Positions 14,604 through 63,885 of a stretch of DNA of 64,000 nucleotides are shown here, one piece after another (within the stretch, counting starts at the first letter, position 1; the number at the start of each line of letters is the position of its first letter). Origin of the DNA: Macrostomum hystrix. Lineage: Eukaryota; Animalia; Platyhelminthes. A model generated the notes under the pieces. It was not told the origin of the DNA. It made no database searches and saw only the letters and a program-made list of their open reading frames with translations. The DNA is taken from positions 2,170,001-2,234,000 of the forward strand of contig CATNEN010000007.1 of the NCBI GenBank assembly GCA_950097015.1. Reading direction: 5' to 3'. Position numbers and translations under genes: made by a program.

Positions 14604-14619
14604 TTACTATTACTATTAC

Positions 14620-14685
<66 letters not shown>
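14604..14685. repeat. (TTA)n microsatellite with a (TTACTA) start
   Basis: Visible run; it accounts for the spurious poly-Leu and poly-Asn ORFs in the track. Confidence 0.95.
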
Positions 14686-16447
14686 CCATCTGCTCTCTCT
14701 TTATCTCTCTCAATCTCTCGTTCTTCCTTTGGTAAGTATTCCCCTTGCAGCTGGAGGGCAAAAGTTTTTGCGCGATTGAAGGCGGGCAACCCCAGTCCTT
14801 TCATGGATCCCTCGCCCGACGGCAATAACCCGTTGGCGAAATATTTCTCGGCGATGGCCGTCTATAGTGTGATATTTTTTACTTAGGTCTCTCTTTGCGT
14901 TGAGATTCCTAAATTTGGTCGGGTGTCCAACTCTTTGCGAGAGATTCTATTGCCGTAACTCGAAAATAACGAAGACAAGACGATTCAAAAGTCCAAGTTA
15001 AACAGCTGATATTTAAGTGTTAATCAGTTAATAAGAGAAGGCTATGAATGATTAATTCCCCTGGCACCTGCCAGGTACTGTACTTAATTTAATTCGATTC
15101 CCAATTCACACTGGTAATTTAGTCGTACTTAACAAAATCTCAATAACTTCAACACAATAACAACAACGCGAACTCTACTCGATAATGCTCTGGATGATAA
15201 CAAGAACTCACGAAAATAACACGAAAATTAACACGAATAACTCCTGGACAAAAAAACAAGATAGTCCCTACAACAGAACAAGGAAAATAACGAGGACCAA
15301 TAACACGAAACCTAACCCAAAGTCCCTAGTCTGAAACCGAGGCGACCAGCAAGCACTTCCGAACTATGGTACAACGATAGTTCTATCGTGCCACACCTAA
15401 TGTCAATTCGATGGCGTCCCACTGATGATTGGGAATGATGATTCCCACTGATGATTCGTGCTTGCCAATCCCTGTCTAACACTGCTAACACTCCGTCAGC
15501 AGTTGGCCAGACGTGCCGAGCTCAGCGCAAGCTACTTACTGACGTGGGATTGAGTGTGGGGTTTTCTTCGACTAGCTGGTTGGACCGGTTTACCTGTCCC
15601 GGTATCTATTACTATGCAACGACAGATAGGGTGCGTAACAACACGGAAAAGAAAAGGAAGACAGATAGGCCTTCACAACGCAATAGCTAGTTATATAGTC
15701 AAACGCCCGCCCCCAGCCCCCATCAAAGCCTGGGTGCCGACCGCGCCGCTTGTTCCACTGCCGCAGGTCGACCCTGCCGGTTAACGAACTGGTCGCTGAT
15801 TGGCCCCGCCCGGGGTGTCGCGCTTAAGTCGGGTCGCATCAGATTGGCTAGCCGTCTTCCTATTGGCTGGGCCCACCAGACCGGGGTTAGTCCGATGCCT
15901 TGGCTGTAGAGCAGGGTGACCGGCCGGTCGCGTGTGTAAGCCTGGCTGGGGCGCGCATGCAGTAACAACTAACATATAACACACATTATAATAATTCATT
16001 AATATTGACGTGCGCGACTAAGTTACTTTAAGTAGAAATATACGCATTATATAATAAACATGTCGACACTAAGTCTCCATGGAAGACTTGGAATCTGCAA
16101 GGCGAGAGGGTTGCGACAATGTCAGGCGGCGCACTCTCGCAGACATGGTCCATCTGGCACGAATTTAACCGAGGAACGTGGACAACCTGCGTGGCGTGAA
16201 GGCTGTATCCCCTCTGTACCACCTTGCCGAGGTTTCCCGGAACTTTTATTGATTGAATCTAAATATACCTTTAACTACTAGATACTCGTGTGAGAGATAC
16301 AATTCAGACTACTGACAACAGTAGAAAAGCAAAGACTTGGCTGCAAAACTGTCACATATCACTAAAAAATATCGCCATAAAAATGGCAAGCTTAAAAGAG
16401 ACTTCTGTGCACACTGAGAGTGGTGGGAGAGGACTGCGTGTGGCTAT

Positions 16448-19097: not shown

Positions 19098-22000
19098 ATG
19101 ACATCAAAGAAAGTAACATTCCTGCTCCTGCTGATTTGCTACTTTATAACAATAACAAAACAAGTCTGCACAACATCGGTAAGAAATACCAGCTTCCAAA
19201 AATACAATAAAAAGTATATATTCTACAAAACCTACATGGCCAAAAATTGGACTTTTACAGGAGCAGATGGACTGTGCTGCGGCCAACGCTTGCCTGAATG
19301 TGAGCAACTGCTTGAACAGGATGGCCGAGATGGAGCAGCAGTGTGCAGCAAATGACCAGGTGAGGTCTCTCTTTCTCGTGTCGATCGATATATTTGCAAG
19401 TTTCACGCCCTGTGCGCTCAGCTATAGCTAATGAGAAACTGCTTCCAATGACTAATAGGTATTTTGCGACACAATTGCAGAACTTTTGCGTAAAGCAAGG
19501 AGTGTGCTACAATCGGACGTTATACCTGCCCTACGCGACCTGCGACTATGGTAGCGACTATTGCAACACCTCGATAAGCGCCAACAGCAGTGGAGCTGGT
19601 GAAAAAGTTCGCTGCTATGCCGGATTCAACCTGTGCCTCACTCGGGAACAGTGCGTCGAAGCAGCCGCAAAGAGGTCGTGCCCCAGCAACGGGACCATCA
19701 TCACATCTGTCTCGTCGAGCAACTCCTGCTTTGTGCCGCCAGATGTGGAGCTTCGCTTTACCCTACTGGAACAGGCTGGCCCAGGTGTGATGAGGCTTGG
19801 CTCGCACCTGCTCGACAGCAGTCGCATCAACCAGGAAATTCAGCTAAACAGATCTATTGACAACAACAGCTGCGTGAGTGCGGATGCGCAGGCGCTTGCT
19901 GGCTACACTGGATCAAATGCTAGCCTGTCATGGGTGAAGCTGAGGATGCGTCTCATTGACAGGCAGGGCAGAGTGATTGCACAATGCCAGCCAACCTATG
20001 GATTCCTGCTGCCACCAAAGTCGCGTCCAGCAGCATCCGCATTCCCGACAGTTGTGCTGCAGAAGAACAGCACCGGAAGTGGCTACTACTACTACAGCGG
20101 CTACTACTACACCGACTACGTGTACCCGTCGAGTCTGCTGCGCACAGCTGCAAACGAATCGAATGCAACAGTGGCACCGTGGTGTGACACTCTTGGCGTC
20201 GCCGAGTTCCCTAGCTATGGACGAAACGCTGCTGCGCGACAGCTGTGTCGAGAGGCGCCAAGAAAGGCTGCCTACTGCTACATCGAGGCGCCGCCACTCT
20301 ACACAGAAGTAACACTCAGTGCATATTCCTACAATAATTTTGCTCCGGCGGTGCCACACAAATCTGGATACCTATTGTTGACGATGGAAAACGCGTACAT
20401 GTATGTCAACCTCAGACAGCCAGGAAGCGTGAGCCTAGTTTGTCGATCGTGGAACGGACTGCTGCCGACGCCCGACACGCCAGTAACTGACAATGACTAC
20501 TTTGGAGATGAGATTCTCCGCATCGGCTACAGTCTGCTCTGCGGCTACGGCAGTGAGCCGTGTCTGGCCACCAAGAATTGCATTGCCATCGGAAATCCAT
20601 GTCGCCGGAGCTTAAACTGCAGTCTAGCGGTGAGTTTTGAGGCTTGCAAAAGTAACAGTGCTGATTGGGGTGCTTCTCTGTTTTTGCTTCCTTCTGCGAC
20701 TGTTACATTGAAAGAGCATCATTTTTGCTATATTACAATTTCAAGGCTATAGAATCTGCTGACTAAATTAGGTTGAAAACTGAGCACATTCTATACGTAC
20801 ACTATACACTATACGTACACTAGCTTCAAGCGCCTCTCCCAGTGAATGCTAGGCGTCGATCGGCCAACCTAAAATGTGACTACTGTATGGCCAAACATTG
20901 GACTTTTACAGGAGCAGATGGACTGTGCTGCGGCCAACGCTTGCCTGAATGTGAGCAACTGCTTGAACAGGATGGCCGAGATGGAGCAGCAGTGTGCAGC
21001 AAATGACCAGGTGAGGTCTCTCTTTCTCGTGTCGATCGATATATTTGCAAGTTTCACGCCCTGTGCGCTCAGCTATAGCTAATGAGAAACTGCTTCCAAT
21101 GACTAATAGGTATTTTGCGACACAATTGCAGAACTTTTGCGTAAAGCAAGGAGTGTGCTACAATCGGACGTTATACCTGCCCTACGCGACCTGCGACTAT
21201 GGTAGCGACTATTGCAACACCTCGATAAGCGCCAACAGCAGTGGAGCTGGTGAAAAAGTTCGCTGCTATGCCGGATTCAACCTGTGCCTCACTCGGGAAC
21301 AGTGCGTCGAAGCAGCCGCAAAGAGGTCGTGCCCCAGCAACGGGACCATCATCACATCTGTCTCGTCGAGCAACTCCTGCTTTGTGCCGCCAGATGTGGA
21401 GCTTCGCTTTACCCTACTGGAACAGGCTGGCCCAGGTGTGATGAGGCTTGGCTCGCACCTGCTCGACAGCAGTCGCATCAACCAGGAAATTCAGCTAAAC
21501 AGATCTATTGACAACAACAGCTGCGTGAGTGCGGATGCGCAGGCGCTTGCTGGCTACACTGGATCAAATGCTAGCCTGTCATGGGTGAAGCTGAGGATGC
21601 GTCTCATTGACAGGCAGGGCAGAGTGATTGCACAATGCCAGCCAACCTATGGATTCCTGCTGCCACCAAAGTCGCGTCCAGCAGCATCCGCATTCCCGAC
21701 AGTTGTGCTGCAGAAGAACAGCACCGGAAGTGGCTACTACTACTACAGCGGCTACTACTACACCGACTACGTGTACCCGTCGAGTCTGCTGCGCACAGCT
21801 GCAAACGAATCGAATGCAACAGTGGCACCGTGGTGTGACACTCTTGGCGTCGCCGAGTTCCCTAGCTATGGACGAAACGCTGCTGCGCGACAGCTGTGTC
21901 GAGAGGCGCCAAGAAAGGCTGCCTACTGCTACATCGAGGCGCCGCCACTCTACACAGAAGTAACACTCAGTGCATATTCCTACAATAATTTTGCTCCGGC

Positions 22001-25000
22001 GGTGCCACACAAATCTGGATACCTATTGTTGACGATGGAAAACGCGTACATGTATGTCAACCTCAGACAGCCAGGAAGCGTGAGCCTAGTTTGTCGATCG
22101 TGGAACGGACTGCTGCCGACGCCCGACACGCCAGTAACTGACAATGACTACTTTGGAGATGAGATTCTCCGCATCGGCTACAGTCTGCTCTGCGGCTACG
22201 GCAGTGAGCCGTGTCTGGCCACCAAGAATTGCATTGCCATCGGAAATCCATGTCGCCGGAGCTTAAACTGCAGTCTAGCGGTGAGTTTTGAGGCTTGCAA
22301 AAGTAACAGTGCTGATTGGGGTGCTTCTCTGTTTTTGCTTCCTTCTGCGACTGTTACATTGAAAGAGCATCATTTTTGCTATATTACAATTTCAAGGCTA
22401 TAGAATCTGCTGACTAAATTAGGTTGAAAACTGAGCACATTCTATACGTACACTATACACTATACGTACACTAGCTTCAAGCGCCTCTCCCAGTGAATGC
22501 TAGGCGTCGATCGGCCAACCTAAAATGTGACTACTGTATGGCCAAACATTGGACTTTTACAGGAGCAGATGGACTGTGCTGCGGCCAACGCTTGCCTGAA
22601 TGTGAGCAACTGCTTGAACAGGATGGCCGAGATGGAGCAGCAGTGTGCAGCAAATGACCAGGTGAGGTCTCTCTTTCTCGTGTCGATCGATATATTTGCA
22701 AGTTTCACGCCCTGTGCGCTCAGCTATAGCTAATGAGAAACTGCTTCCAATGACTAATAGGTATTTTGCGACACAATTGCAGAACTTTTGCGTAAAGCAA
22801 GGAGTGTGCTACAATCGGACGTTATACCTGCCCTACGCGACCTGCGACTATGGTAGCGACTATTGCAACACCTCGATAAGCGCCAACAGCAGTGGAGCTG
22901 GTGAAAAAGTTCGCTGCTATGCCGGATTCAACCTGTGCCTCACTCGGGAACAGTGCGTCGAAGCAGCCGCAAAGAGGTCGTGCCCCAGCAACGGGACCAT
23001 CATCACATCTGTCTCGTCGAGCAACTCCTGCTTTGTGCCGCCAGATGTGGAGCTTCGCTTTACCCTACTGGAACAGGCTGGCCCAGGTGTGATGAGGCTT
23101 GGCTCGCACCTGCTCGACAGCAGTCGCATCAACCAGGAAATTCAGCTAAACAGATCTATTGACAACAACAGCTGCGTGAGTGCGGATGCGCAGGCGCTTG
23201 CTGGCTACACTGGATCAAATGCTAGCCTGTCATGGGTGAAGCTGAGGATGCGTCTCATTGACAGGCAGGGCAGAGTGATTGCACAATGCCAGCCAACCTA
23301 TGGATTCCTGCTGCCACCAAAGTCGCGTCCAGCAGCATCCGCATTCCCGACAGTTGTGCTGCAGAAGAACAGCACCGGAAGTGGCTACTACTACTACAGC
23401 GGCTACTACTACACCGACTACGTGTACCCGTCGAGTCTGCTGCGCACAGCTGCAAACGAATCGAATGCAACAGTGGCACCGTGGTGTGACACTCTTGGCG
23501 TCGCCGAGTTCCCTAGCTATGGACGAAACGCTGCTGCGCGACAGCTGTGTCGAGAGGCGCCAAGAAAGGCTGCCTACTGCTACATCGAGGCGCCGCCACT
23601 CTACACAGAAGTAACACTCAGTGCATATTCCTACAATAATTTTGCTCCGGCGGTGCCACACAAATCTGGATACCTATTGTTGACGATGGAAAACGCGTAC
23701 ATGTATGTCAACCTCAGACAGCCAGGAAGCGTGAGCCTAGTTTGTCGATCGTGGAACGGACTGCTGCCGACGCCCGACACGCCAGTAACTGACAATGACT
23801 ACTTTGGAGATGAGATTCTCCGCATCGGCTACAGTCTGCTCTGCGGCTACGGCAGTGAGCCGTGTCTGGCCACCAAGAATTGCATTGCCATCGGAAATCC
23901 ATGTCGCCGGAGCTTAAACTGCAGTCTAGCGGTGAGTTTTGAGGCTTGCAAAAGTAACAGTGCTGATTGGGGTGCTTCTCTGTTTTTGCTTCCTTCTGCG
24001 ACTGTTACATTGAAAGAGCATCATTTTTGCTATATTACAATTTCAAGGCTATAGAATCTGCTGACTAAATTAGGTTGAAAACTGAGCACATTCTATACGT
24101 ACACTATACACTATACGTACACTAGCTTCAAGCGCCTCTCCCAGTGAATGCTAGGCGTCGATCGGCCAACCTAAAATGTGACTACTGTATGGCCAAACAT
24201 TGGACTTTTACAGGAGCAGATGGACTGTGCTGCGGCCAACGCTTGCCTGAATGTGAGCAACTGCTTGAACAGGATGGCCGAGATGGAGCAGCAGTGTGCA
24301 GCAAATGACCAGGTGAGGTCTCTCTTTCTCGTGTCGATCGATATATTTGCAAGTTTCACGCCCTGTGCGCTCAGCTATAGCTAATGAGAAACTGCTTCCA
24401 ATGACTAATAGGTATTTTGCGACACAATTGCAGAACTTTTGCGTAAAGCAAGGAGTGTGCTACAATCGGACGTTATACCTGCCCTACGCGACCTGCGACT
24501 ATGGTAGCGACTATTGCAACACCTCGATAAGCGCCAACAGCAGTGGAGCTGGTGAAAAAGTTCGCTGCTATGCCGGATTCAACCTGTGCCTCACTCGGGA
24601 ACAGTGCGTCGAAGCAGCCGCAAAGAGGTCGTGCCCCAGCAACGGGACCATCATCACATCTGTCTCGTCGAGCAACTCCTGCTTTGTGCCGCCAGATGTG
24701 GAGCTTCGCTTTACCCTACTGGAACAGGCTGGCCCAGGTGTGATGAGGCTTGGCTCGCACCTGCTCGACAGCAGTCGCATCAACCAGGAAATTCAGCTAA
24801 ACAGATCTATTGACAACAACAGCTGCGTGAGTGCGGATGCGCAGGCGCTTGCTGGCTACACTGGATCAAATGCTAGCCTGTCATGGGTGAAGCTGAGGAT
24901 GCGTCTCATTGACAGGCAGGGCAGAGTGATTGCACAATGCCAGCCAACCTATGGATTCCTGCTGCCACCAAAGTCGCGTCCAGCAGCATCCGCATTCCCG

Positions 25001-43000: not shown

Positions 43001-46000
43001 CGCAGGCGCTTGCTGGCTACACTGGATCTAATGCTAGCCTGTCATGGGTGAAGCTGAGGATGCGTCTCATTGACAGGCAGGGCAGAGTGATTGCACAATG
43101 CCAGCCAACCTATGGATTCCTGCTGCCACCAAAGTCGCGTCCAGCAGCATCCGCATTCCCGACAGTTGTGCTGCAGAAGAACAGCACCGGAAGTGGCTAC
43201 TACTACTACAGCGGCTACTACTACACCGACTACGTGTACCCGTCGAGTCTGCTGCGCACAGCTGCAAACGAATCGAATGCAACAGTGGCACCGTGGTGTG
43301 ACACTCTTGGCGTCGCCGAGTTCCCTAGCTATGGACGAAACGCTGCTGCGCGACAGCTGTGTCGAGAGGCGCCAAGAAAGGCTGCCTACTGCTACATCGA
43401 GGCGCCGCCACTCTACACAGAAGTAACACTCAGTGCATATTCCTACAATAATTTTGCTCCGGCGGTGCCACACAAATCTGGATACCTATTGTTGACGATG
43501 GAAAACGCGTACATGTATGTCAACCTCAGACAGCCAGGAAGCGTGAGCCTAGTTTGTCGATCGTGGAACGGACTGCTGCCGACGCCCGACACGCCAGTAA
43601 CTGACAATGACTACTTTGGAGATGAGATTCTCCGCATCGGCTACAGTCTGCTCTGCGGCTACGGCAGTGAGCCGTGTCTGGCCACCAAGAATTGCATTGC
43701 CATCGGAAATCCATGTCGCCGGAGCTTAAACTGCAGTCTAGCGGTGAGTTTTGAGGCTTGCAAAAGTAACAGTGCTGATTGGGGTGCTTCTCTGTTTTTG
43801 CTTCCTTCTGCGACTGTTACATTGAAAGAGCATCATTTTTGCTATATTACAATTTCAAGGCTATAGAATCTGCTGACTAAATTAGGTTGAAAACTGAGCA
43901 CATTCTATACGTACACTATACACTATACGTACACTAGCTTCAAGCGCCTCTCCCAGTGAATGCTAGGCGTCGATCGGCCAACCTAAAATGTGACTACTGT
44001 ATGGCCAAACATTGGACTTTTACAGGAGCAGATGGACTGTGCTGCGGCCAACGCTTGCCTGAATGTGAGCAACTGCTTGAACAGGATGGCCGAGATGGAG
44101 CAGCAGTGTGCAGCAAATGACCAGGTGAGGTCTCTCTTTCTCGTGTCGATCGATATATTTGCAAGTTTCACGCCCTGTGCGCTCAGCTATAGCTAATGAG
44201 AAACTGCTTCCAATGACTAATAGGTATTTTGCGACACAATTGCAGAACTTTTGCGTAAAGCAAGGAGTGTGCTACAATCGGACGTTATACCTGCCCTACG
44301 CGACCTGCGACTATGGTAGCGACTATTGCAACACCTCGATAAGCGCCAACAGCAGTGGAGCTGGTGAAAAAGTTCGCTGCTATGCCGGATTCAACCTGTG
44401 CCTCACTCGGGAACAGTGCGTCGAAGCAGCCGCAAAGAGGTCGTGCCCCAGCAACGGGACCATCATCACATCTGTCTCGTCGAGCAACTCCTGCTTTGTG
44501 CCGCCAGATGTGGAGCTTCGCTTTACCCTACTGGAACAGGCTGGCCCAGGTGTGATGAGGCTTGGCTCGCACCTGCTCGACAGCAGTCGCATCAACCAGG
44601 AAATTCAGCTAAACAGATCTATTGACAACAACAGCTGCGTGAGTGCGGATGCGCAGGCGCTTGCTGGCTACACTGGATCAAATGCTAGCCTGTCATGGGT
44701 GAAGCTGAGGATGCGTCTCATTGACAGGCAGGGCAGAGTGATTGCACAATGCCAGCCAACCTATGGATTCCTGCTGCCACCAAAGTCGCGTCCAGCAGCA
44801 TCCGCATTCCCGACAGTTGTGCTGCAGAAGAACAGCACCGGAAGTGGCTACTACTACTACAGCGGCTACTACTACACCGACTACGTGTACCCGTCGAGTC
44901 TGCTGCGCACAGCTGCAAACGAATCGAATGCAACAGTGGCACCGTGGTGTGACACTCTTGGCGTCGCCGAGTTCCCTAGCTATGGACGAAACGCTGCTGC
45001 GCGACAGCTGTGTCGAGAGGCGCCAAGAAAGGCTGCCTACTGCTACATCGAGGCGCCGCCACTCTACACAGAAGTAACACTCAGTGCATATTCCTACAAT
45101 AATTTTGCTCCGGCGGTGCCACACAAATCTGGATACCTATTGTTGACGATGGAAAACGCGTACATGTATGTCAACCTCAGACAGCCAGGAAGCGTGAGCC
45201 TAGTTTGTCGATCGTGGAACGGACTGCTGCCGACGCCCGACACGCCAGTAACTGACAATGACTACTTTGGAGATGAGATTCTCCGCATCGGCTACAGTCT
45301 GCTCTGCGGCTACGGCAGTGAGCCGTGTCTGGCCACCAAGAATTGCATTGCCATCGGAAATCCATGTCGCGAATATTTAAGCTGTGGAGTTGTAAGTTTT
45401 TTGTAGTTTGGATTGTGTTTTAGTCAGTCTCTTTGGTTTTGCTTTTTATTAGTGATGTAGTACTATGTCTTGTTTTGCTTTTCTTGAAGCAACTCGCCGT
45501 GTACTATTAGTACCCTTTGGGTGATGTGATTTGAAAACTAATTAGCGTGTTTTTTCAGGTTGTGTGTCCCGGAAGCAAACTTCTATTGTGTTATTCCTCT
45601 TGTATTTCGTCTCTTCTTGAGCTGCGATCGCGGTGCAGCTTGTCCGACAAGGTGTGTTTGATTAAATAAAATTGTTCTTAATCTCAGGGTGACTTTTCTG
45701 TAAAAAATTCTGTAAGCATAAATTTTATATACAGGATTTTTGTCCGTCGACTGCGAAATGTGGCGTTGTTTCTTCGGAGAGTTGTCCGGCGCTGTCTGCA
45801 AATTTAACACAATGTGGGGACGAGAATAAGGTGCGATTAGTAGCTTTTTTGCTCTAATAATACTTTTACATTAGCTTTTACAATAACTTTTAAACATTAG
45901 TTGTGCAACTTCCAGTACTCTTCTTACCTACCAACAGAAATGGACTGCAGAGCTATCAAATGCAATGTGGGCCCCATTCTAGCACTCTGAGCCATGATTT

Positions 46001-49000
46001 AATTCAGCTGTCTTTATTATTCCTAATATCATTCTCCCTGCCTGCTCTCTCAGTTGTCTATTATCAGTTTTGTAGACTAGAGTACTTCTCAGTTGCATAA
46101 TATGTCCTAAATCATTATTTGCGCTAAATGGAGAAGAAAATGAACTCATGGGTTTAATTACCTTTTTCCGCACGAATTCATTCGCAGACCGCCTGCCCGC
46201 ACGCATTCGGTGCCTGCCTTGATTTTGCCAGCTGCCGGCAGCTGTGTCCTCGCTCTGACCGACTCCTGCCAGCTGCCCAGCTCGTTTCAGACTTCAAGAC
46301 CCTGTACAGAGATGCAGCGGACTCCGGCGTCTGCCGCACCGGCCATCTACTGGGTGCCGCTTCTGCTGCCAGCCTCCGCGTGCTCTCTGCGGTGCCGGCT
46401 GGTGTAGAAATGGAGCTCGACGGGCTCAGGGTCAACATGAGCGGCAGGCCGGTGATGATCGGTCGGGACAGCTGCTTCCAGATCCGTGCTAACAGCTACC
46501 AAAATGTGGCTGTCAACGTTACTTACTCCTTGCAACTGTCAGACGGCTCCGAATGTATCCTGAGGGCCACAGTGCTTCTGCCGCCAAGAGCAGCGCCTTC
46601 CAATGTGACTGCGATCAGAAGCAGTCTCAGCTTGCAGGACACCTCAGCTCTGGATGTGGCGCTCTCCACTGTGCTGTCAGCGTCGCCCTCTGCATTCCCT
46701 GGGAATGACGTGTGCAATCTGCAACTGAACAATCCACTCGACTTGCATGCTGAGAGAAGCGCCTGCAGGGCCCGCTCTGGCGTTGAGGCCTCAATTGCTA
46801 GCGGTGTTTTCTGCTACTACCTTGTGCCACCTGAGGGGTTAGTATTCCTTAGTTCTACGTTGTACTGAATTTTTTCTCTTTTCACTCTATTTAGACGTAT
46901 ATTTTATATATGCTCTAGCCTGGCCTAGCTATTTCAAGAAAGCCCCAGCAGTTTTTTATGAGTTAAATGACTTTATGAAGTACGTTTACGAGCTATATAC
47001 TCATGCGCGAGTATGTCCGAGATTTTGTACTTTTTATTCCTTCAAAATAGAGAATAATTTTTATTCCTACAAAATAGGGAATAATGGGACGTAGGGGTAC
47101 TTGACTTACTTGACTTTGCTGCAGGGCGGTCCGAAGACTCAGTGGGGAGGCGACAGTCACCCATTTCGCTAATCCATGAAAAGCCCGCTTCAGCCAATTG
47201 TTCGGGGCCAGTCAAGGAGATCCGTGGCCGGTCTTTCCTGCAGCGTATTCCTCGCTAGGGAAGAAGGATGCTCCTCTGGTAGCCCTCCGGAGGAGCCGTA
47301 AGATGCTCTCGGATCTGCAAACGTCTTCTATGGATGGGTTCGGTCCAAGGTGATTTATCCTCTCTTTATTAAATAAATAGCAGTGACCGAAGAAGTGTAG
47401 GGCACCCCATTCTCGAGCATTCAGGATGCATACAGCTCGTTCCGAAGGTCTCCCCGGAGGAAGCAGTGCCTGGCATAGCAGCCAAGGCCTATAAGGGTCA
47501 TGGTGACGGCTCGGATTTCCTTCCGGATATGGTTCAGGAGGACCTTCCGGAGCCGGGTGGCTGGAACCCGGACCACCGCTCTGGATTGGCGGCATGTACA
47601 GGACAAAATGGTTGTCGGAATTAAAGATGATTGTCTTGCCTCAAATTTTCTTTTGGCTCAGTTTTGTGGGACAGAAGCTGAGGACTAAGAATTCATTTTG
47701 AAAAAAAAGTACATGAATTTCCAGTGTGTTGGGCGTCGGTGGCGATGACATGCCCATTGATGAGGATGCAGACCCCGAAACCGGCATTACCGTCTTTCAT
47801 GGAATCCGTACGTGTACAATGGACCTCCTGGGCTCTCCAGTGGACCACTCTAGCTTGCTGCCAGTAGGGATTGAGAACCTTGAAGCGGTTAGGACGGTGA
47901 TTCCGTTGCACATCCCGACATACTTTGGGTAGAGGGCTGTGTGTGGTGCGAGCTTTCGGTGTGGATTAAAGCGCACCCCAGCGTCGAGGAGGCACCGGGT
48001 GGCTTTTTGCGGCCTCGCTGTGGATATAACGATCAAGCGGGAGAATATTTAAAAATGCGTTAAGACCGTCAAAAGGGGAAGATGGCGGCGCGCTCATGAT
48101 CATGCGACACGCGTGGCCCTGCACTCTCATGGCATGTCTTTAGGTGCAGGGCGCTGGCTGCATAACTGCTTATCCAGCGGTTATAAATTTGGGTGGCTTG
48201 TAGCGGCTCCAGTCAATGGACTAAACAGCGCCGCGCAATAGCTGTACGTCTAACTCCTTCAATTAATCTACCTTTTCGGTCAAGGTGCCTTTAAGTTTAA
48301 GGCATACTTTGCTTTACTTTTTCGGATTAAGATACATTTTCACACTCGATGAGCTCCATGTTGTTTTTAGTACCTGATTATTATCCAAGAAGTAATTAAA
48401 TAGTAGCAATTTATAAATAAAATTTGTTCAGATCTTGCGCAGTGCATCAGTAGTTTTCAAAGCTTCCTCATTTTTCTTCTATTTGCTTTCCTATCTATTT
48501 CAGGCCTGATATTTATGGAAATTTGACCTTCCGAAGCACAGTTTCGTCCATCATCATCAGCGAGTATCGTGGAGGCTTTCTGGTGCCCAGTCCCGAGCAG
48601 GCCTACATGCGCTTTGAGCCCAATCGCAATGCGGCAACAAAGACCTTCGTTCTAGTTTGTCAGGGCTGGAGCGGTCTACCTCCGCTGGTGAGTTACACCA
48701 GCTCAGGCTCTCTAGTTGTTTCTGCTCTACCTTCTACGGCACTCGGAAACCAAGTGAGAATCACAATCAGCGTGCTGCACCTAGACCAGCCTCCAGTTGT
48801 GAACAAAAACTTCTTCACATCTGGAGTCCTTCGAGACAGTGAGAGCGAGTACGTGAGCCTCCGCTTGCAGCGGGAGCGAGGCTTCATGCTGCAAAGACAC
48901 GGCGAGACTGTCGCCAGTCAGATCCGGATCGGCGATATGGTATCCATGTTCTTCTGCGACGATGACACTTTCGATTTGGGGGCTCTGGTACTGCAGGCCG

Positions 49001-52000
49001 TCAGCGACAGTAGATTCGGCATTTTCGAATATCTCCTGCCAGGTGCGGTCTCGTGGCAGCTTCTAAATGTCTCTGCAGATAAACCGCAGTACGCCCAGTA
49101 TCGAATGCTCTCACGCTTCAAAGATCAATCCAGGACTGCAGATGCGTTTTCAACCATTCAGTGCGCTGGCAGCATCTCATCGACGTTGCCACTGAGCTTG
49201 CAAAATGCCCAGCTGTCCGACTTTCTCGCTGATGACATCAATGGAACCGGGCTCATAAGTGCCATATACCTGCCACCCAACGCTACTCTCCGGTACTCAC
49301 CGATTGCTCCGGCTTCGTGGTCCCGCAGTCGTGTCGTCATTGCCTTCACAGCGGCCGAGAAGCTCGCTGCCCAGCAACAGGTCCAAATCAACCCATTGCT
49401 TGTCAGCAGCGTTGTTAACAAAAGCTCAGCCGCCGGCTGGGCAGTGGCTCGTCCGATAACCATTGGATGTGATAATCAGCCATGGTCGGGGCTTCAGACT
49501 GATGTGTGCAGCGTTTGTGGAGGAAATGGTCGCTCCTGCATAGACTGCCACGGCGACGCTAATGGCACTGCGATCTGGAACGACTGTGGCTACTGCGTTG
49601 GAGGTAAAACGAGCAGAGGCCTGCGATACGGCAAAGACTGCTCTGGTCAGTGCAACGGGACGTTTGTGTCGCCAATGCCCGGCCTCTGCTACAACTCAAG
49701 CCGATTCCCAACTTCCGATGAGTATATTCGGTCTGTATGGTGCGATGGCGTGGTGAACAGCACGGCTTACATCAATAAGTGCGGCTTCTGCACAGAGGGC
49801 AGCACCGGAAAGCCCGCCACCTTTGGTATTGGCCCCTGCGGCTGCGGAAACGACACTTCCTGCATCACCGGCTGCGACGGTGTCGCTCAGACGTCTGCTT
49901 TACTTCGAAAGAGTTTTGACAAGTGCGCCCGGTGCCTGCTGCCTACTGACTCTCAGCGAGACATCTGTCCCAGCATTCGCTTTATCATCAGCCCACAAGT
50001 CTGCGTTGGATCCTACGGCACTGACCAGCAAGTGACAGTCATCAGCAGCGCTGTTAACATCACTATCAGCTCGATCACTCTGCGCTTACTTCGGGTGTCC
50101 GATCGGGTGAGGCTACCGGGAACTGCATACTAGAACATTTTATTGAGCAAATACCCCGTTAGAAGTAAAATAATTCTAAGCCTTTAGTGAGTGTCTTGCT
50201 GGTCGCATATTTCCGAATTTCCTATTTCAGTCGTTCTATTTGGAGCTTCAGTCCAAGTCCATCGACGCCTCATCTGGTGTGTTTACCTTCTGGGTACCAG
50301 CGGGTCTCGTATCGGGTCAGTACTTGCTGCAGGCAAAGTACACCACCTCGACAGGAGTGAATGTTACCGCGGATGTCTCCGGCGGCCAACTGACTGTGTT
50401 TGGACCACCCAGCCTGTCTAGCTTTGGAATTGGCAGCTCAATCAACGTTGAGGACCGAGTTCTGTCACTACCAGTGAGCGGGCAAGGATTCGCAAACAGG
50501 TCAGATCTTGCCTGCCTTTTGTACTGCGACAGTCTTAGTCGTCACACCAGCTGTGACCCGCGCACCAGCTTTTTGACTGTACCGGCAAAGTTTGTGAGCG
50601 AGAGAAGCGTCATTTGCGACATCTCGGCATTGGCTGAAGTAAAACAGCCGCTTCAGTGGAGGCTCAGTGTCATGTCCTGCCAGCCGCAGCATCTCACAAA
50701 TGACGCCTACGCGGTGTTCAGGTAAGCCACCTGGCACATCAATACTTCGAACCTTCCACGCTCCACGGTATTAAATCCTATCACGTGTTCTCATCCCTTA
50801 GATAATATCATAATATTTACGAGTATTAGCTCTTATCGCTGATTGCAGATTTGATCTTTGAAATCATCAATTTTCAGCATTACAGCAGATTTGTAAGATT
50901 TGCAGCATCAGATTTACCAGCAGTAAATTATGTGGAATTCAGGGGCGAACATACTCCAGACCGCAAAACGGGCAAAAAAAACGGAACGACCGTCTCAATT
51001 AGTCAAAGCCTGTTAAAATTTGTGTATTTGATTACCTTTACTAACTGGTGTGACGTGTCTCACTTACAAAAACTTGCTTAAAATTTGCGCCCTAAAACAG
51101 ACAACACTCTCTGGTGCTTTCCATCCGCTCGAGTCGAGGCCCAGTACTTCGATCGGCCACCGAAGATGCAAGTGGCTACTTTCTTCGCCTGCAGTTTGAC
51201 ACCAATATCCAGCTCCGCCAAGCATCTTGCTCAGCCATACTTGACGCTGCAAGCCTCGCACTGATGGGCTCGGAGCCTGAGTGCTACACGATTGCCAACA
51301 ATCTCATCCTGCGGAAAGGCCGGAACGCTTCAGCCTGTGCTGGCTCGCGGATCAGCCTGAATCCGAATGTTGTGTACGTGCAGGGCTGCGACTTTAACTT
51401 GGCTGCGAGTTCAAGCGTCAGCAACGCTGTTCTAGCAGGGAGCAGTCGGGAGCCGCCTACCATTGCTCTATTAGGATTGTCGCCAGATGCAGATCAGGTG
51501 GCCACTGTTGGAAACTGCGACAGCTTCCAGCTGTACGCCATTGTTAGGAACTCAATGGTGCGTCGCATCACGTGGGATATTCAGTGCGCCAGTGGGTCTG
51601 CATGCGAGCCGTCTCAGCTCGCTACTTTCAGGTCCAAGTTCAGCACCGACTTTGCGTATTACATTGGAACCGACGTAAGTAGCACAACGAAAATATGTTT
51701 TTCAAGTATTAGTAACAGAGAATATTAGTAACTACGAGAATACAAAAACTCCTACCTTTTGCGGCACGTACTATTGCGTCAAAATCGTATAGCCCTAGAA
51801 ACTAACAGATTGAGAGAAACGCACAGTTACAGGGGTGGAGAGACGGAGAGGGAGAGAAAGCATTATATGGCAGGCAGTGGCCTCAATAAAAAATCACAAG
51901 TTAGGAACTGGAAGTGCGGAGCCTAACCATTCACTTTTGCATTATAAATCAATGTTAGTATGCATTCCGACTGTCCCTCAAGATTCCTCCTGGAGAATCC

Positions 52001-55000
52001 TACAACATCACTGCCTCGGCTGCGAATGAGTGTGGTACTCAGTCGAGTCGCGTGAGCATTGTGGTCCGACGACTCATCGAAAAGACGCCTTTCAGGATTG
52101 AAGTCATCGGTCAAAAAAAGTTTGTTTCACCTGATGAGATCTACACTGCAGTGTTGTTCGTATATCCTTCAATATGCTATGCGAAAGCACTGGACAGCCT
52201 GAGTGTAAGCGAAAATTTGCACTTCTTGAGGTAGAGAAAATGTACGTTTCTGCTCATTTCTCTGTGATTGATGTGTATTTTTGTTGGTGCGTTGATAGCT
52301 AAAAAACACATTGAGAGTCCCGTTGAATTCCGAATCGTTCCGCCTTTCTATAGCAGTTTTTTCTTTGAAAATATCTGCATTTACAGTACAGCTGGAAGAT
52401 CGTCGGCGGAAGCCGGGCAGTTGGAGTCGATGTGCAGTCGATTCAAGGACGCTTCTTCCGACTGCAGGCTGGAGTTCTCCAAGGCGGTCAAACGTACAAC
52501 GTGAGCGTCTGTGCCTCAATGCCAACTTGGCAGAATGCCGCGTGTGGTTTCATCTTGGTGGAGACAATAAGTCGACCCTTGGTTCCGCTGTTTCTCCGCG
52601 GAGGACGTTCGGATCTTGGCATGTCCGAGTCACTCCAGGACTCAGTGTACGTTATTGACCCGGACTTCTCAACTGAGGATCTCTTCGTGGCCATCTACCT
52701 GACCAACTTGTCGAATGGCGGAGCCATCTACATGCGCAATCTGCACAGCGGTGGTGTCATCTCTTCTTTCAGCTTCTTTGGCCTTGACGGCTTCCGAACA
52801 TCTTCAAGCATCATTCAAATTCCTTGGCCTAATCCGAGCGTCTATGAGCTGCCCTCAGGCTGGCTGAGGCTCACCGTCATCTGCCAACGTGGCCAACGTA
52901 GATCCAGCATCGCCAAGATTGTGCAGATTTTGCCGCGACCTCCTCCGTCAGTACGATTTCTGACAGAGCCGAGTAACAGGCCGAAAAATCTGAACGCAGC
53001 TATTGTCGTGACCGCCGTAGTAACTGCCAACGAGATTACGCAGACTCAGTGGGCTCTGGAAACTCAACAGGCAGGATTTGGCTCGCTGCCACTTGAGATT
53101 TGCTCGGTGGGGCCACCGCTGGCTGAAACCTGCTCACCAGGCCGCAGATGCTTCATCACTCTTGTCTTGAAGCCAGGACCGAGCTGCGTGTTTGCCGCCG
53201 GTGCTTCTTATCGACTGCTTCTGACTGCCAGTGCCAGTTCTGGAACAGCCCAGGCTCAGTTCGACTTCCGAATTAACTCCCCTCCAAGGGGAGGAGCGCT
53301 CTCTGTCACGCCAAGCCAGGGCACCGCTCTCAGGACCTCCTTCGCTCTTACCGTGTGGCCAAACATCACCGACGACTCAGACGTGTCATTCTTCTATAGC
53401 GTCATGTGCTGCCGCCAGAATTCTCCAAGCCAGTGCATCTCAGTCACAAGTGAGCCAACGCCTTCATCGATCATCACAACCCGACTGCCAAGCGGCAACT
53501 GGATTTGCAAAGCCTCAGCCATCGATTCTAACGGTGCAGGCTCGGACTGGTTCTCCAGCATTGGTGCGATTCAGGTGCAAACAGAGCAGTTGACTCTAGC
53601 TAAGATCGATGACATGATCAGCAACCTGAACAATATTTCTTCTAGCTGTGAGTAAATATTAGTTTCTGTGCTTTAGTTCGAATGAATCATGCAGATTTCG
53701 CAGTTGAAAATATGAAAAAATCTATTTGAAATCGCAGTTGACACTCCCAGTCTGGGTGGTATGATAATGATCGAGCCGGACGCCAGCTTGTCAGCAATCG
53801 AGAAAAGCAAACGTCAGGAGTTGGTGCAAGTATTGGCGACTCGCGATCTGCTCATGTTGGACACAAAGTGAGAGGACGCTTCTGTAGTTTTTAAATTCAT
53901 TTAAAAAATAACATACCAACCAATAGTTACTAACCGTCTTTTTTGACTGCAGCATCCGTACTCTTTATATTGTTTTACATTTATACACACACCTTATAAG
54001 TCAAGCGTGTCCCCGTTTTACTTTGCGACTCGCTTTAAGTACAATGTTTTATTTTCGTGTATGGTAGTAAAGTGCATGTCCTTTCAAAGTGATGGAGATC
54101 AATCGGTATCGCAGGACGCAAAGTGGTCTTACGCAGGACGGATAATCCTATAGGACTCGATTCTAAGCAGCTACAAAGAGGAATATGGTTCGCAAGTGCA
54201 AGTAAACAGGACAATTTCCTACGGGATCACGTAAATCAGGCATTCAAAACGGACAAACAAGCAGGCCATGGGATCACTTCTCTGGCGTACAAAAGGCATA
54301 CACAATGCACATAGACAGTTTGGGCGAATCAGAGTGTGGGAACAAAGACCTAAAACGAGATAATTTTTGGAGAAAAAACATCTTAGGATTGATATTCAAA
54401 ACGTAATGAAAGGCTTGAGTTGAATGCAAAAAGCCTAGGGAGTAGGCCTAGTTAAAAATTGTCGAATTTTTACTCCTGTAGTTAATTTTTTCCGCGAGTT
54501 GTTGCCTGTGGTCAGAAAAAATCTGAAGATAGATGCTAATGAAAGTCCAGAATTCAGAATTTTTAACTCAACTCGCGCGCTTCTGGGGCGCCATTCAATA
54601 TACGAGCGTAATGCTGTATTCTAAAACTACAATTTTCTGCGCAACTGTGAAAAATCAAATTCGTCGGAATGCCATTGCATTAGAAAGTATTTCGTTCCAT
54701 GTTGACATGTCGGCATCCCGCCAATTGAAAGAAAAATATCGCTACTTCGATTTCCCTTAGTGTTTTGAGAGACAGGATTGATAATCAACAATGCTATGCT
54801 GCTAACTTTTGCGTAAATTTTTTACCCTTACATTCGTTTCAGTGAGCCGTCGACATCATGCATGAGAGCTGCCAGCAGTTGCCAACTGCTTCGACGAACC
54901 AAGGCTGACAGTCAGTTCTTCACGAGCCTAGTACTTGACTCTCTGGAGAAATGCTTTAAAGCATTCATCTCACCAACGTCCTCCACAACATTGTCAGTTG

Positions 55001-56672
55001 GGGCGGTCGGAAAGCGCCGCCGCAAACGTGATTCTAACTCTCAGGGTGGCACATCGAGCAAGATGACTGCGACTGAAGTAAAGTCCGTGCTTGACATTGC
55101 CTCCGGAAGCTTCTATTCTAATCTTGATTCAACCGCGTCAGCTAATATGCAGGCAAAAATTCTTGGCACTGTACCAGCTTTCTGCAATAACCAGAACCCG
55201 AACGCTCTCGCCCAATCTGCGGCATCGCAGATGGCCGTTGTGCGAATTTACAAAACATCTTTTAAAACGATCGGCTCCGTCGATCTCGAGATGGGGTGTG
55301 AAGCTGGAGCCACTGACTGTCTAAACTCCTTCGCAGATCGTCAGCAGATTTTACTCGGAGCTGATCTGCAGCAGCGCTACTACAACTGGTCATGCGGACA
55401 GCCAGACTGCTTCCAGGACGGTGCCTGCATTGGTACGATCCTTCTGGATAAAGACCTGCTCACACCACAAGCGAAAGTTGCCACTCCAACAATTTCAACC
55501 CGACGCAGTCCATTGGCATACGTTGGCATATTTCATCCGAGCAATGGTGCCAACCAAAACGTCTCGCGCCTCAGCAATGCCGTCGCCATCACAGCCAACA
55601 TCAGTGGCTCTGTAAACTTAAGCAGCACAAGCCTTATTTGCCGAAGCTGGAGTGGCGTCGACTGGACTGCGGAAAACTGCACTACCAGAGCCCCATTCCA
55701 GACCAGCGATGGAATCTGGCACGTAACATGTTTGTGCCGCGACATCTCCTCCTTCATCGGTGTTTTCGAGGGGCCACCTGGCTTCAAGCCAGAAACCACC
55801 GTCGCTCCATCGACCACCGAGACCACAGCAGTGACCAGAACAGGGACCACAACAGGGACGACAACAGGGACCACAACAGTGGCAACGACCGTAGCGCTAA
55901 GTGTGACCGCGCCGACACTCTCTGATTCTTCAACACTGGCTGTAACCCTGCGAATCAGAATCGTGGAGAGCTACACCACAGTTGTGACCAGTGAAAACAG
56001 GCTACGTAGTTATCTAATCAGCCAACTTTCACGTCAGTTGAGGCTTGCTGATTCGCAGATATCTGACATGCAATTCGCGAATGGTAGCGTCCTCGTCAGC
56101 TTCACATTGAGCAGCCAGGAAGGCGACACTTCCAGTCTCGTAGCTGCGGTACAGTTGCTGGTGCAGCTGATGAACAATCGACAGCTAGTGCTTCTTGGAC
56201 TGAACAACAGCACGCTGACGCTTTCTTGGGACTATCTAGATGTGCTTGGTGTGCAGAAAAGGGCCGTGAACACTGACAGCGGAAGCAGCAATGTCGTCAT
56301 CATTGCAGTTGGAGTCTCTGTTGGAAGCGTTTGTCTTATCATCGCATTGGTAGTCGTTATAATAATGATGAACAGGAGCTTCCGGAGTAAAAAAGTAGCT
56401 GACGAGTCGCAGGAACAGAATGCTGGGAATGACAGCAGTGGGTACAGAACTGGCGACATCAACGCATCCGTCACCGGTAACGGCGAAAGTCAAGTTGCGA
56501 AAAAGAGTAAGTTTTTGAGCCATTTAAATCTCGAAGTTTATGCAGTGGTGACGTAAGGTCGTGTATGCACTTAAATTAATTTTTTTATGAATATAATAAC
56601 TCTGCCCTGTAAATATTTTTAGATATAATACAACGAGCCGATTCTGTTGACATCGTGAAATTGGACGGCTAA
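19098..56672 (+). CDS. Gene 2: giant paralog of gene 1 with 16 tandem Cys-rich modules, ~8,927 aa, 43 exons
   Basis: Exon 1 is 19098-19178 (MTSKKVTFLLLLICYFITITKQVCTTS, signal-like, donor gtaaga). Then 16 x [A exon 19261-19359 and B exon 19481-20629, each +1651n], with the last B exon at 44246-45391. Then 45559-45651, 46188-46837, 48504-50106, 50231-50721, 51101-51674, 51983-52204, 52387-53647, 53738-53867, 54843-56506 and 56623-56672. Total 26,784 nt with no in-frame stop. Eight downstream exons have exactly the gene 1 lengths (93, 650, 1603, 491, 574, 222, 1261, 130). AATAAA at 56693. Confidence 0.8.
19236..45370 (+). repeat. Coding tandem array: 1,651-bp unit, 15.8 copies (16 A/B exon pairs), near-identical
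   Basis: Track ORFs recur at exactly 1,651-bp spacing from 19394 to 44159. Unit = 99-nt exon + 121-nt intron (gtgagg...ttgcag) + 1,149-nt exon + 282-nt intron (gtgagt...ttacag). Few variants seen: A>T at 39727, 41378 and 43029; G>T at 40963. Confidence 0.97.
46188..53867 (+). CDS. Gene 2 core exons (diverged module, Cys repeats, IPT-like, REJ), mostly near-identical to gene 1
   Basis: Track ORFs 48523-50133, 50240-50725, 51114-51728 and 52432-53655 are almost identical to gene 1 ORFs 4992-6722, 6776-7312, 7701-8315 and 9020-10255. Confidence 0.88.
47098..48030 (-). mobile_element. Decayed non-LTR retrotransposon fragment (RNase H plus C-terminal CCHC) in a gene 2 intron
   Basis: Minus strand, broken by frameshifts and stops: TDSMKDGNAGFGV...GNSCTF and KTIIFNSDN (RNase H motifs), then KEIRAVTMTLIGLGCYARHCFLRG and a decayed C-x2-C...HFFGHC knuckle. 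Short (CAAGTAAGT)-like tail at 47098-47118. This intron is 1,666 bp versus 137 bp in gene 1. The 5' boundary is approximate. Confidence 0.7.
54843..56672 (+). CDS. Gene 2 terminal exons: furin site, GAIN/GPS-like, Thr-rich, SEA-like, TM, tail
   Basis: KRRRKR at 55012-55029; GPS-like from 55639; GSVLV at 56083; TM VVIIAVGVSVGSVCLIIALVVVIIMM at ~56293-56370. The phase-1 donor A|gtaagt at 56507 has the same phase as gene 1's last intron. Last exon 56623-56672 ends ...ADSVDIVKLDG*. Confidence 0.8.
55839..55876 (+). repeat. 12-bp coding repeat (GTTT)x3 in the Thr-rich stalk of gene 2
   Basis: acagggaccaca-type units encode TGTTTGTTTGTTT; absent from gene 1. Confidence 0.85.
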
Positions 56673-63690: not shown

Positions 63691-63885
63691 TAACGGCCTT
63701 TTTGTGAGTTGGCGACTTCCTGCTGCTTTGACTCTTGATTGTGTATTGTAATTGCTAAATGAAATTATTTGCTTGTTATTATTGTCTTCTGTTTGAGGGG
63801 AGCAGTTAGCAAGTATTATCTATAATTATCCAAATATCAAGCCAAGTAGAAAGTTGTGGTTTTTTTCATGGCAGAGCTTATTCCC

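Follow-up and report, generated by a model that had tools for sequence, protein, structure and literature searches.

A Macrostomum hystrix gene predicted to encode a giant REJ-domain membrane glycoprotein from a homogenised array of exon pairs

A stretch of 64,000 nt from Macrostomum hystrix (GenBank assembly GCA_950097015.1, contig CATNEN010000007.1, positions 2,170,001 to 2,234,000; hereafter the window) carries what appears to be a real protein-coding gene of a Macrostomum flatworm, predicted to specify a giant type-I membrane glycoprotein. As modelled, the gene combines a single-pass REJ protein with a multi-exon array of the LPA KIV-2 style. We favour, with somewhat more than even confidence, this identity taken together with an origin of the array by amplification of one exon pair and a role of the product as a rod on the cell surface.

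Gene model and tandem array

The model joins a signal-peptide exon, the array, and nine downstream exons that encode a core of about 2,250 residues. All 41 introns are of the GT-AG type, and the resulting CDS of 26,787 nt runs with no internal stops to the stop codon at 56554-56556, giving a protein of 8,928 residues with a predicted mass of ~970 kDa before glycans and 226 N-glycosylation sequons. The sixteen modules of the array make up three quarters of its length. Exon 1 encodes a short basic start followed by a hydrophobic run and ends at a GTAAG donor. A first-pass annotation of this DNA had proposed a protein of ~8,900 residues, left without a stop by splicing and consisting of a signal-peptide exon followed by a long ectodomain of repeated modules on a REJ-containing, membrane-anchored stalk. 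The gene model, the Pfam match to REJ, and the transmembrane helix bear this out, but the feature end at 56672 was not reproduced. An alternative 70-nt terminal intron would alter the last few residues only.

19098-19178, forward strand: exon 1, with the start codon and an N-terminus of 27 aa resembling a signal peptide (read by eye; gene model)
19236-45370, forward strand: tandem array, 15.76 copies of a 1,651-bp unit (self-BLAST, unit comparison)
19261-19359, forward strand: exon A in the first unit, a phase-0 exon of 99 nt encoding 33 aa with 4 Cys (read from the sequence; gene model)
19481-20629, forward strand: exon B of unit 1, 1,149 nt, 383 aa, 20 Cys, phase 0 (read from the sequence; gene model); returns every 1,651 bp
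44246-45391, forward strand: last exon B, 382 aa; matches the array to 45370, then has its own tail and donor

Self-BLAST and a unit-by-unit comparison agreed on the 1,651-bp period. Each unit contains a 99-nt exon A and a 1,149-nt exon B, both in phase 0, which together encode 416 residues with 24 cysteines and 12 sequons; the unit introns are 121 and 282 nt long. There are 16 A exons, repeating every 1,651 bp to a final copy at 44026-44124, and 16 B exons. Units 1-12 match at every base, introns included, amounting to 19.8 kb without differences. Only two variant sites occur in the whole array, both confined to units 13-15: a synonymous A>T change (TCA>TCT) is common to these three units, unit 14 has an additional G>T change (Gly>Val), and unit 16 is back at the reference base after this ordered block. 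The tail of the last exon B comprises seven residues that are diverged yet homologous to the array module. A motif search of the unit found neither AATAAA nor ATTAAA polyadenylation hexamers. We infer that all 32 array exons would be joined in one mRNA. The first-pass description of the array (sixteen units of two phase-0 exons and 416 residues, 12 sequons in each, and introns as identical as exons) was matched on every point, the sequons by an independent count.

The module family in Macrostomum

The module was found only in Macrostomum. Three M. lignano UniProt models (A0A1I8J2W3, A0A1I8FW02, and A0A1I8FVC6), for which we found no mention in the literature, carry it at 51-63% identity to the array module. 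In A0A1I8J2W3, four identical modules come after two diverged ones, and the model breaks off inside the array. The M. lignano models have the same A/B exon boundaries and a core with a poly-Arg site and a TM helix, as here. A contig from another sequencing run (Logan L001; 1,744 bp, 67% amino-acid identity) begins and ends with the same 30 nt, as expected of a k=31 assembly closing on a uniform tandem array, and so implies a 1,714-bp unit. Judged from the four identical M. lignano modules and this self-closing contig, homogenised arrays are a trait of the family. Nucleotide similarity to three related contigs is restricted to exons A and B, with no detectable similarity in introns, and M. lignano protein models join B-A-B at boundaries matching those of the array gene; together these observations give outside support for the exon boundaries. 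In a tree, modules group by gene or species, and those of separate genes or species differ by 30-45%.

Pfam gave no match in the module. A confident fold was obtained for residues ~150-375 only and is a generic Ig-like β-sandwich; a fold search with the module returned generic Ig-like sandwiches only (Z <= 6.5), and no recognisable ligand-binding fold emerged.

The neighbouring paralogue

Upstream of the array gene lies a paralogue, part of which falls within the window, and its terminal exon ends near 12398. Within that part, as the first-pass annotation had noted, it carries the module once.

2188-3517, forward strand: single module of the paralogue (gene 1), exon A 2188-2286 and exon B 2405-3517 (sequence comparison)
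4255-11710, forward strand: paralogue core; identity to 46134-55835 is 97-99%, in introns as well

The paralogue's module is an old and diverged one that shares about 57% amino-acid and 75% nucleotide identity with the array module. Their dN/dS of 0.19 suggests purifying selection, although dS is saturated and the test correspondingly weak; a paralogue module under such selection would be a functional domain. For the cores, dS is about 0 over 7 kb, introns included, alongside the module with its saturated dS. This juxtaposition points to gene conversion or recent exchange in the core tract, and suggests that gene conversion is active at the locus.

The core and membrane-proximal region

Downstream of the array, the core exons and the features of the terminal exon are as follows.

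45735-45830, forward strand: Cys-rich linker exon, 32 aa (gene model); a similar small exon is present in the paralogue
46188-46837, forward strand: core exon; its 3' end and the start of the next exon carry between them a diverged old copy of the module's C-terminal half
48504-50106, forward strand: core exon, 534 codons, Cys-rich with several C-G-x-C motifs; without Pfam match, collinear with M. lignano P0008
50231-50721, forward strand: core exon, no recognised domain (gene model, Pfam)
51101-51674, forward strand: core exon immediately 5' of the REJ match; exon end agrees with P0008
51983-52204, forward strand: core exon, 74 codons; both boundaries fit the P0008 protein
52387-53647, forward strand: REJ-domain exon, Pfam match over about 52873-53568
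53738-53867, forward strand: small exon; relative to paralogue 10276-10446, protein conserved and DNA diverged
54843-56556, forward strand: terminal exon, 570 codons plus TAA, with furin-type site, GPS-like motif, linker, SEA-like stretch, TM helix, and tail
55012-55029, forward strand: K-R-R-R-K-R furin-type dibasic site; identical in the paralogue, comparable poly-Arg site in M. lignano P0008
55639-55773, forward strand: GPS-like motif C-x2-W-x4-W-x4-C ... C-x-C (Cys/Trp pattern read by eye; weak Pfam match)
55774-55935, forward strand: Thr/Pro-rich mucin-like linker, about 55 aa (read by eye)
55936-56256, forward strand: SEA-like stretch with G-S-V-L-V (motif read by eye; alternating strand/helix pattern)
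56293-56370, forward strand: single transmembrane helix of 26 hydrophobic residues, with basic residues after it (read from the sequence)

The half-copy of the module in the core (about 46746-46837 and 48504-48684) aligns across a splice junction with a local alignment score of 68 (z 6.2), which 0 of 500 shuffles reached, and hhalign gave hints besides. The REJ domain (PF02010) was matched with an E-value of 1.4e-17 and 63.9 bits against a cut-off of 25, over profile positions 179-412 of 452. Searches with the REJ and terminal exons found no relatives within the length windows searched, and the likeness to characterised REJ proteins is therefore carried by one Pfam match.

Nearer the membrane the signals are fainter. 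The GPS-like motif has D-I-S in place of the canonical cleavage triad H-L-T, and Pfam GPS, the sole family reported there, scored well short of its threshold (9.4 bits against 22.5, E 2.1, over profile positions 2-42 of 45). The G-S-V-L-V of the following stretch resembles the SEA cleavage motif G/SVVV; for SEA over 55936-56256 there was no Pfam match at E<=10 and no PDB sequence match, and the structure model had a pLDDT of 30. Likewise, GAIN gave nothing significant in Pfam and no PDB sequence match, and its structure model (pLDDT 30) was unusable. Of the REJ/GAIN/SEA/TM core named in the first-pass annotation, REJ and the TM helix stand, and Pfam, PDB search, and folding lent no support to GAIN or SEA. 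The TM helix is the only hydrophobic segment of transmembrane length; it lies about 520 nt (170 residues) from the GPS-like motif and precedes a C-terminal tail of 61 residues. A single helix rather than seven, together with this 170-residue spacing, sets the protein apart from adhesion GPCRs.

Comparison with known repeat and REJ proteins

With the REJ/polycystin-1 family, and with suREJ1 in particular, the predicted protein shares REJ followed by a GPS-like Cys/Trp motif, a membrane anchor, and a large modular ectodomain. Reportedly, suREJ1 is likewise anchored by one TM helix with a short tail and lacks a PLAT or 11-TM polycystin part; the flatworm protein has no PLAT or PKD_channel match and no 11-TM part. 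Unlike these proteins, however, it showed no EGF, C-type lectin, or PKD repeats by Pfam in module and core exons (E<=0.1 to 10), its GPS-like triad is altered, its N-terminal modules are sixteen copies of a genus-restricted orphan domain, and a Thr-rich linker plus about 110 residues separate its GPS-like motif from the membrane.

Human LPA KIV-2 is an intragenic two-exon repeat with near-identical units of 5.5-5.6 kb (PMC6314250, PMC4378929). The flatworm array is alike in that near-identical copies of a two-exon unit, with its introns, follow one another in frame, such that protein length would track copy number; here too the unit consists of whole exons, preserves the frame, and has introns as uniform as exons. 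By contrast, the flatworm unit is only 1.65 kb long, encodes a 416-residue non-kringle module, and belongs to a membrane-anchored product; moreover, the likeness concerns array structure in one assembly, whereas KIV-2 is a copy-number repeat.

VERL and EBR1 are also large extracellular tandem-repeat proteins. In VERL, concerted evolution keeps internal repeats uniform while edge repeats diverge, and the diverged tail of the last unit here and the diverged first two modules in M. lignano are similar in this respect. The module and core nevertheless show no ZP-N/ZP, CUB, or TSP1 signal (Pfam found no Zona_pellucida match in the window pieces or in M. lignano P0007 or P0008), and the flatworm unit contains introns. 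The VERL/EBR1 comparison drawn in the first-pass annotation was not sustained, as Pfam and the fold search found the module unlike the repeat types of either protein. Another giant Macrostomum protein with dozens of long tandem repeats, the M. lignano adhesive protein Mlig-ap2, has repeats of 21 x 255 aa and 25 x 221 aa and is built from vWD, TIL, LDL-receptor, and TSP1 domains; REJ is not described, and the word transmembrane occurs 0 times in the text (PMC6410801). Its repeats, however, are unrelated to the array module.

Discussion

We propose that unequal crossing-over amplified one A+B exon pair, a state still present in the neighbouring paralogue, and that continuing unequal exchange or gene conversion maintains the uniformity of the array. 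Such ongoing exchange would account for introns no less identical than exons, for the abrupt boundary of the homogenised block 21 nt before the last exon B ends, and for a module tree ordered by gene or species rather than by position. That the array is homogenised, as first annotated, is borne out by its uniformity at the DNA level, the confinement of similarity in relatives to exons A and B, and the module tree. The chance that the array is real and its size misassembled, by over-expansion or collapse of identical units, is appreciable but below even; 16 units and 8,900 residues would then not be the true allele. Because 19.8 kb of identical units is hard for most reads to span, the assembled count may err in either direction. 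Published Macrostomum assemblies, among which that of the window is not necessarily included, combine noisy PacBio reads, canu, and Arrow plus Pilon, a polishing able to even out repeat copies, and one M. lignano model ends abruptly inside its own array. Ordered variant units followed by a reference-like unit 16 are nonetheless unlike a naive duplication artefact, and homogeneous arrays occur in two further independent data sets. It is very unlikely, in our judgement, that the array is a recent runaway expansion, functionless or harmful, with a long form that is poorly expressed, partly skipped, or becoming a pseudogene while the one-module paralogue does the work. Near-zero divergence between units would leave selection without time to act, and any number of phase-0 A+B pairs could be skipped in frame; yet 26.8 kb of CDS contain no stop or frameshift and every splice site is intact, multi-module genes in M. 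lignano and two other sources suggest that the genus at large tolerates or favours arrays, and the last unit, with its diverged tail, indicates an array older than its present uniformity.

If the array is as assembled, its architecture suggests a long, stiff, multivalent rod on the cell surface for adhesion or recognition, with the number of units setting reach and valency. Membrane-proximal cleavage would be probable at the furin-type site and perhaps occur at the GPS-like or SEA-like sites, and the cleaved ectodomain may stay held non-covalently or be shed. Two more specific roles both strike us as doubtful. A gamete-recognition receptor in the manner of suREJ1, VERL, or EBR1 would carry its multivalent array on sperm or egg, evolving in concert within a species and diverging between species. 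REJ with a single TM helix is the layout reported for suREJ1, the VERL-like pattern of uniform units within the array and 30-45% difference across genes and species fits, and sexual selection is strong in Macrostomum; yet Pfam found no C-type lectin, EGF, ZP, or CUB/TSP matches in the module, and the low (if saturation-limited) dN/dS is at odds with the rapid adaptive divergence that gamete-recognition proteins usually show. Equally doubtful is a membrane-tethered, mucin-like protein of the epithelial glycocalyx, acting as spacer, barrier, or anchoring surface with MUC1/MUC16-like membrane-proximal break points under force. The order seen here, in which a Thr-rich linker and a stretch with G-S-V-L-V lead up to the TM helix and its short tail, is that of tethered mucins, and the sequons are abundant; in addition, binding to the glycocalyx on the microvilli of anchor cells has been proposed for the M. 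lignano glue (PMC6410801). Against this role, SEA was unconfirmed and the repeats are disulfide-rich folded modules: long Pro/Thr/Ser tandem repeats are missing, and the only Thr-rich sequence is the ~55-residue linker. A bolder reading, which we think unlikely, takes the array as a species-specific, length-variable recognition surface for mating or fertilisation in hermaphrodites whose genus is noted for sexual conflict. It would be a flatworm counterpart of VERL on a REJ stalk, with concerted evolution keeping the array uniform within each species and distinct from those of related species. A further option, also unlikely, is that the amplified module derives from the GPS-bearing β-sandwich, in which case the protein would have 17 GAIN-B-like domains; the module, its old core copy, and the GPS-like region have in common a short strand motif that ends in C-R-S-W-(N/S)-G.

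Should the long form be expressed, few single-pass surface proteins predicted from any animal would be as large, and the gene would be a clean non-vertebrate case of a multi-exon coding array in which copy number sets protein length. A family confined to Macrostomum, with its own uniform module in each gene or species, makes a workable system for studying concerted evolution within a coding region, and the locus adds apparent gene conversion between paralogue cores beside strongly diverged ends. Because M. lignano is amenable to RNAi and transgenesis, the function of a channel-less, REJ-stalked protein is directly addressable. Public M. lignano models of the family call for care in annotation: they are fragments, none covering a full array, listed in UniProt as uncharacterised entries, and the automatic names attached to them (EGF-like, ZP, disintegrin, GON) are unrelated and misleading.

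Gene model and support for its exons

The array gene was modelled as 42 exons with GT-AG at every intron, comprising a signal-peptide exon, 16 units of exon A plus exon B, and nine downstream exons. Positions of the first unit, and of the upstream paralogue, on the forward strand of the window were as follows.

19098: start codon of the array gene; 27 signal-peptide-like residues and a GTAAG donor, read from the sequence
19261-19359: exon A of unit 1; 33 aa, phase 0
121-nt intron between exon A and exon B
19481-20629: exon B of unit 1; 383 aa, phase 0
282-nt intron from exon B to the next exon A
about 2188-12398: gene 1, the paralogue, with one module (exon A, 2188-2286; exon B, 2405-3517)

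The nine downstream exons were picked by open frame, splice consensus, and match to P0008, a Macrostomum lignano UniProt entry of the same family. The resulting coding sequence of 26,787 nt translated into 8,928 aa with no internal stops, in line with the stop-free product of ~8,900 aa claimed in the first-pass annotation, whose 1,651-bp, two-exon, phase-0 unit, repeated in frame, was likewise reproduced by the measured period and by the model. Each unit encoded 12 N-glycosylation sequons, the number counted previously, and 24 cysteines; the whole protein contained 226 sequons and 463 cysteines in a mass of ~970 kDa. The earlier description of the gene was thus confirmed and differed at the 3′ end only: the model stop codon fell at 56554-56556, where an alternative 70-nt intron would alter the last residues only.

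Comparisons with relatives bore on the exon boundaries. Three short contigs from other samples carried related modules at 52–77% amino-acid identity, and at the DNA level they resembled the window unit in exons A and B alone, up to the proposed boundaries, with no similarity between the introns. M. lignano UniProt models joined B-A-B at the same positions as the window model, and a local alignment of module against core crossed the 46837/48504 junction without a break, which supports a splice there. No AATAAA or ATTAAA occurred within the array unit. All units are predicted to be included in one mRNA.

A homogenised array

Because the 1,651-bp period exceeds the 500-bp maximum of Tandem Repeats Finder, which did not report the array, we measured the period by self-BLAST of one unit, and found 15.76 copies at 19236-45370. 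Units 1–12 were identical at all 1,651 positions, and the earlier remark that the introns are as identical as the exons thus held. Units 13–15 shared a synonymous A>T change (TCA>TCT), unit 14 additionally carried a G>T change (Gly>Val), and unit 16 had the reference base again before departing from the repeat at 45370. The homogenised block began 25 nt 5′ of the first exon A and stopped within the last exon B, 21 nt short of its end; past this point, the tail of the last unit was homologous but diverged and its intron was unrelated. A single recent burst of duplication would have copied this tail as well, and its divergence argues that the array is older than its present uniformity and that unequal exchange keeps the units uniform.

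A run of identical units might also be produced by over-expansion during assembly. Uniform arrays of the module are, independently, seen in two other data sets. In the M. lignano protein A0A1I8J2W3 (2,727 aa), a signal peptide is followed by two diverged modules and then by four identical ones of 409 aa, with junk at the contig end. The Logan contig L001 (1,744 bp, run SRR28338156) contained an exon A and an exon B, each followed by an intron, and its first 30 nt were the same as its last 30 nt, as expected of a k=31 assembly closing on a uniform 1,714-bp tandem unit. A second contig, L002, contained exon B and then exon A, and a module tree grouped modules by gene or species rather than by position. 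Taken together, the uniform arrays in relatives, the exon order in L002, and the tree make it very likely that the array itself is real rather than a mere product of assembly. The number of units, 16, is uncertain because 19.8 kb of identical units surpasses the span of most reads.

Exact look-ups of two M. lignano UniProt entries, P0007 and P0008, found no contigs. P0005 and P0007–P0010 are fragments of one family to which automatic annotation has given four unrelated names (EGF-like, ZP, disintegrin, and GON domain-containing). Pfam found no EGF-like, ZP, disintegrin, or GON domain in P0007 and P0008, the entries scanned, and the names probably stem from chance matches to cysteine-rich patterns.

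The repeated module

The 416-aa module had no Pfam match at E≤10. Five relatives emerged when 1.8 billion representative proteins were searched exhaustively with HMMER; those with a named source were M. lignano UniProt entries and the remainder contigs. A structural model built from a 10-sequence family alignment (pLDDT 61) was confident at residues ~150–375 only, where it predicted a beta-sandwich with helices; exon A and the first 150 residues formed a series of short cysteine-spaced motifs without a usable model. Foldseek gave no match to the model at E≤0.001, and a VIA fold search matched many unrelated Ig-like domains (best Z 6.5) with no standout family. As no match rose above the others, the module was not labelled a PKD domain, a ZP-N domain, or a lectin.

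The core contained a diverged old copy of the module's C-terminal half (local alignment z 6.2; 0/500 shuffles). At the GPS-like region of the terminal exon, a short strand motif with C-R-S-W-(N/S)-G at its end occurred again (z 3.3; 5/500 shuffles), a match that is suggestive only. Every array unit contained a tyrosine-rich insertion, G-Y-Y-Y-Y-S-G-Y-Y-Y-T-D-Y, at 20085-20130 in unit 1, which the paralogue and all aligned relatives lacked or had in a much shorter form; each unit had 29 tyrosines.

Core and membrane-proximal region

The core features bearing on its domain assignment were as follows.

52387-53647: exon with the REJ domain
54843-56556: terminal exon
55012-55029: K-R-R-R-K-R
55639-55773: GPS-like motif
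55936-56256: SEA-like stretch
56293-56370: transmembrane helix

The first-pass annotation had described a REJ/GAIN/SEA/TM core. Its REJ domain was recovered by Pfam (E 1.4e-17), and its membrane anchor corresponds to a single 26-residue hydrophobic helix followed by a 61-aa tail. The GAIN and SEA labels are plausible but unproven. The Cys/Trp pattern of the terminal exon fits a GPS motif, with D-I-S replacing the expected H-L-T, and GPS was the sole family that Pfam listed for this stretch, although its score (E 2.1, 9.4 bits) fell far short of the threshold. A threonine-rich linker precedes a stretch containing G-S-V-L-V, which we take to recall the SEA cleavage motif. AlphaFold2, given a 3-sequence alignment of the terminal exon, returned an unusable model (pLDDT 29.8), and PDB sequence searches, run with a profile of that exon and with single pieces of it, yielded no meaningful hits. 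Most core exons had no Pfam match at E≤10. A word-index protein search with the terminal and REJ exons found no match within the length windows that it covered.

K-R-R-R-K-R, a stretch of five to six basic residues, separates the REJ domain from the GPS-like motif. It was identical in the paralogue (10890-10910), P0008 has a comparable poly-Arg run, and the stretch is a likely furin-type (proprotein-convertase) site.

The paralogue and probable gene conversion

The claim that the paralogue has the module once held for the part visible in the window. No signal-peptide exon was found upstream of its exon A in 1-2190, and the gene may start beyond the window. The paralogue and array modules shared 57% amino-acid and 75% nucleotide identity, with saturated dS (about 1.8), dN of 0.33, and dN/dS of 0.19, values from which we read ancient divergence under purifying selection; given the same ratio, we rejected rapid evolution of the module as a claim with support.

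By contrast with these modules, 4255-11710 and 46134-55835 were 97–99% identical over ~7 kb of core, introns included. Identity fell to 84% across the SEA-like/TM part, the C-terminal tails were unrelated, and a small exon (10276-10446 in the paralogue, 53738-53867 in the array gene) was old and diverged. This mosaic of a near-identical, sharp-ended core tract and diverged ends is typical of gene conversion and indicates that it has operated between these cores. Intron 46838-48503 of the array gene spans 1,666 nt, compared with a ~100-nt gap (4951-5052) in the paralogue; the extra length is probably an insertion, and no long ORF was present on either strand.

Comparison systems and possible function

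The structure of the product as a single-pass REJ-family protein with a homogenised multi-exon coding array and a genus-restricted orphan module is well supported. The sea-urchin REJ receptor, a single-pass protein with lectin and EGF modules, has the nearest layout; the array protein lacks those modules and has an extra, mucin-like membrane-proximal part. At the DNA level, the likeness is to KIV-2 of human LPA, also an in-frame two-exon repeat unit, whose copy number determines protein length (PMC6314250, PMC4378929).

As a best reading of the sequence, the array protein would stand on the cell surface as a long multivalent rod, cleavable at its base and acting in adhesion or recognition; the first-pass interpretation was partly supported. 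Such a rod may act in mating or fertilisation, along the lines of the gamete-recognition comparators named in that annotation, or in an epithelial glycocalyx. Identity with the adhesive proteins Mlig-ap1 or Mlig-ap2 was rejected, as their domains differ and no membrane anchor has been described for them. We found no published descriptions of REJ or polycystin proteins in Macrostomum or flatworms, and no published mention of the M. lignano UniProt accessions of the module family; relatives of the array protein are already in public databases, uncharacterised.

Other features of the window

A 6.7-kb AT-rich spacer separating the paralogue and the array gene contained a long simple-sequence tract (14450-14880) that reads as poly-Leu or poly-Tyr depending on frame. 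GC-rich (about 60%) retroelement debris occupied 60250-63700, where one ORF encoded an integrase zinc-binding domain and rve core (E 1e-16 and 2e-13), a second ORF overlapping it matched RNase H and, weakly, zf-RVT, and gag-like ORFs carried a CCHC-type motif; the region looks like nested or broken elements.
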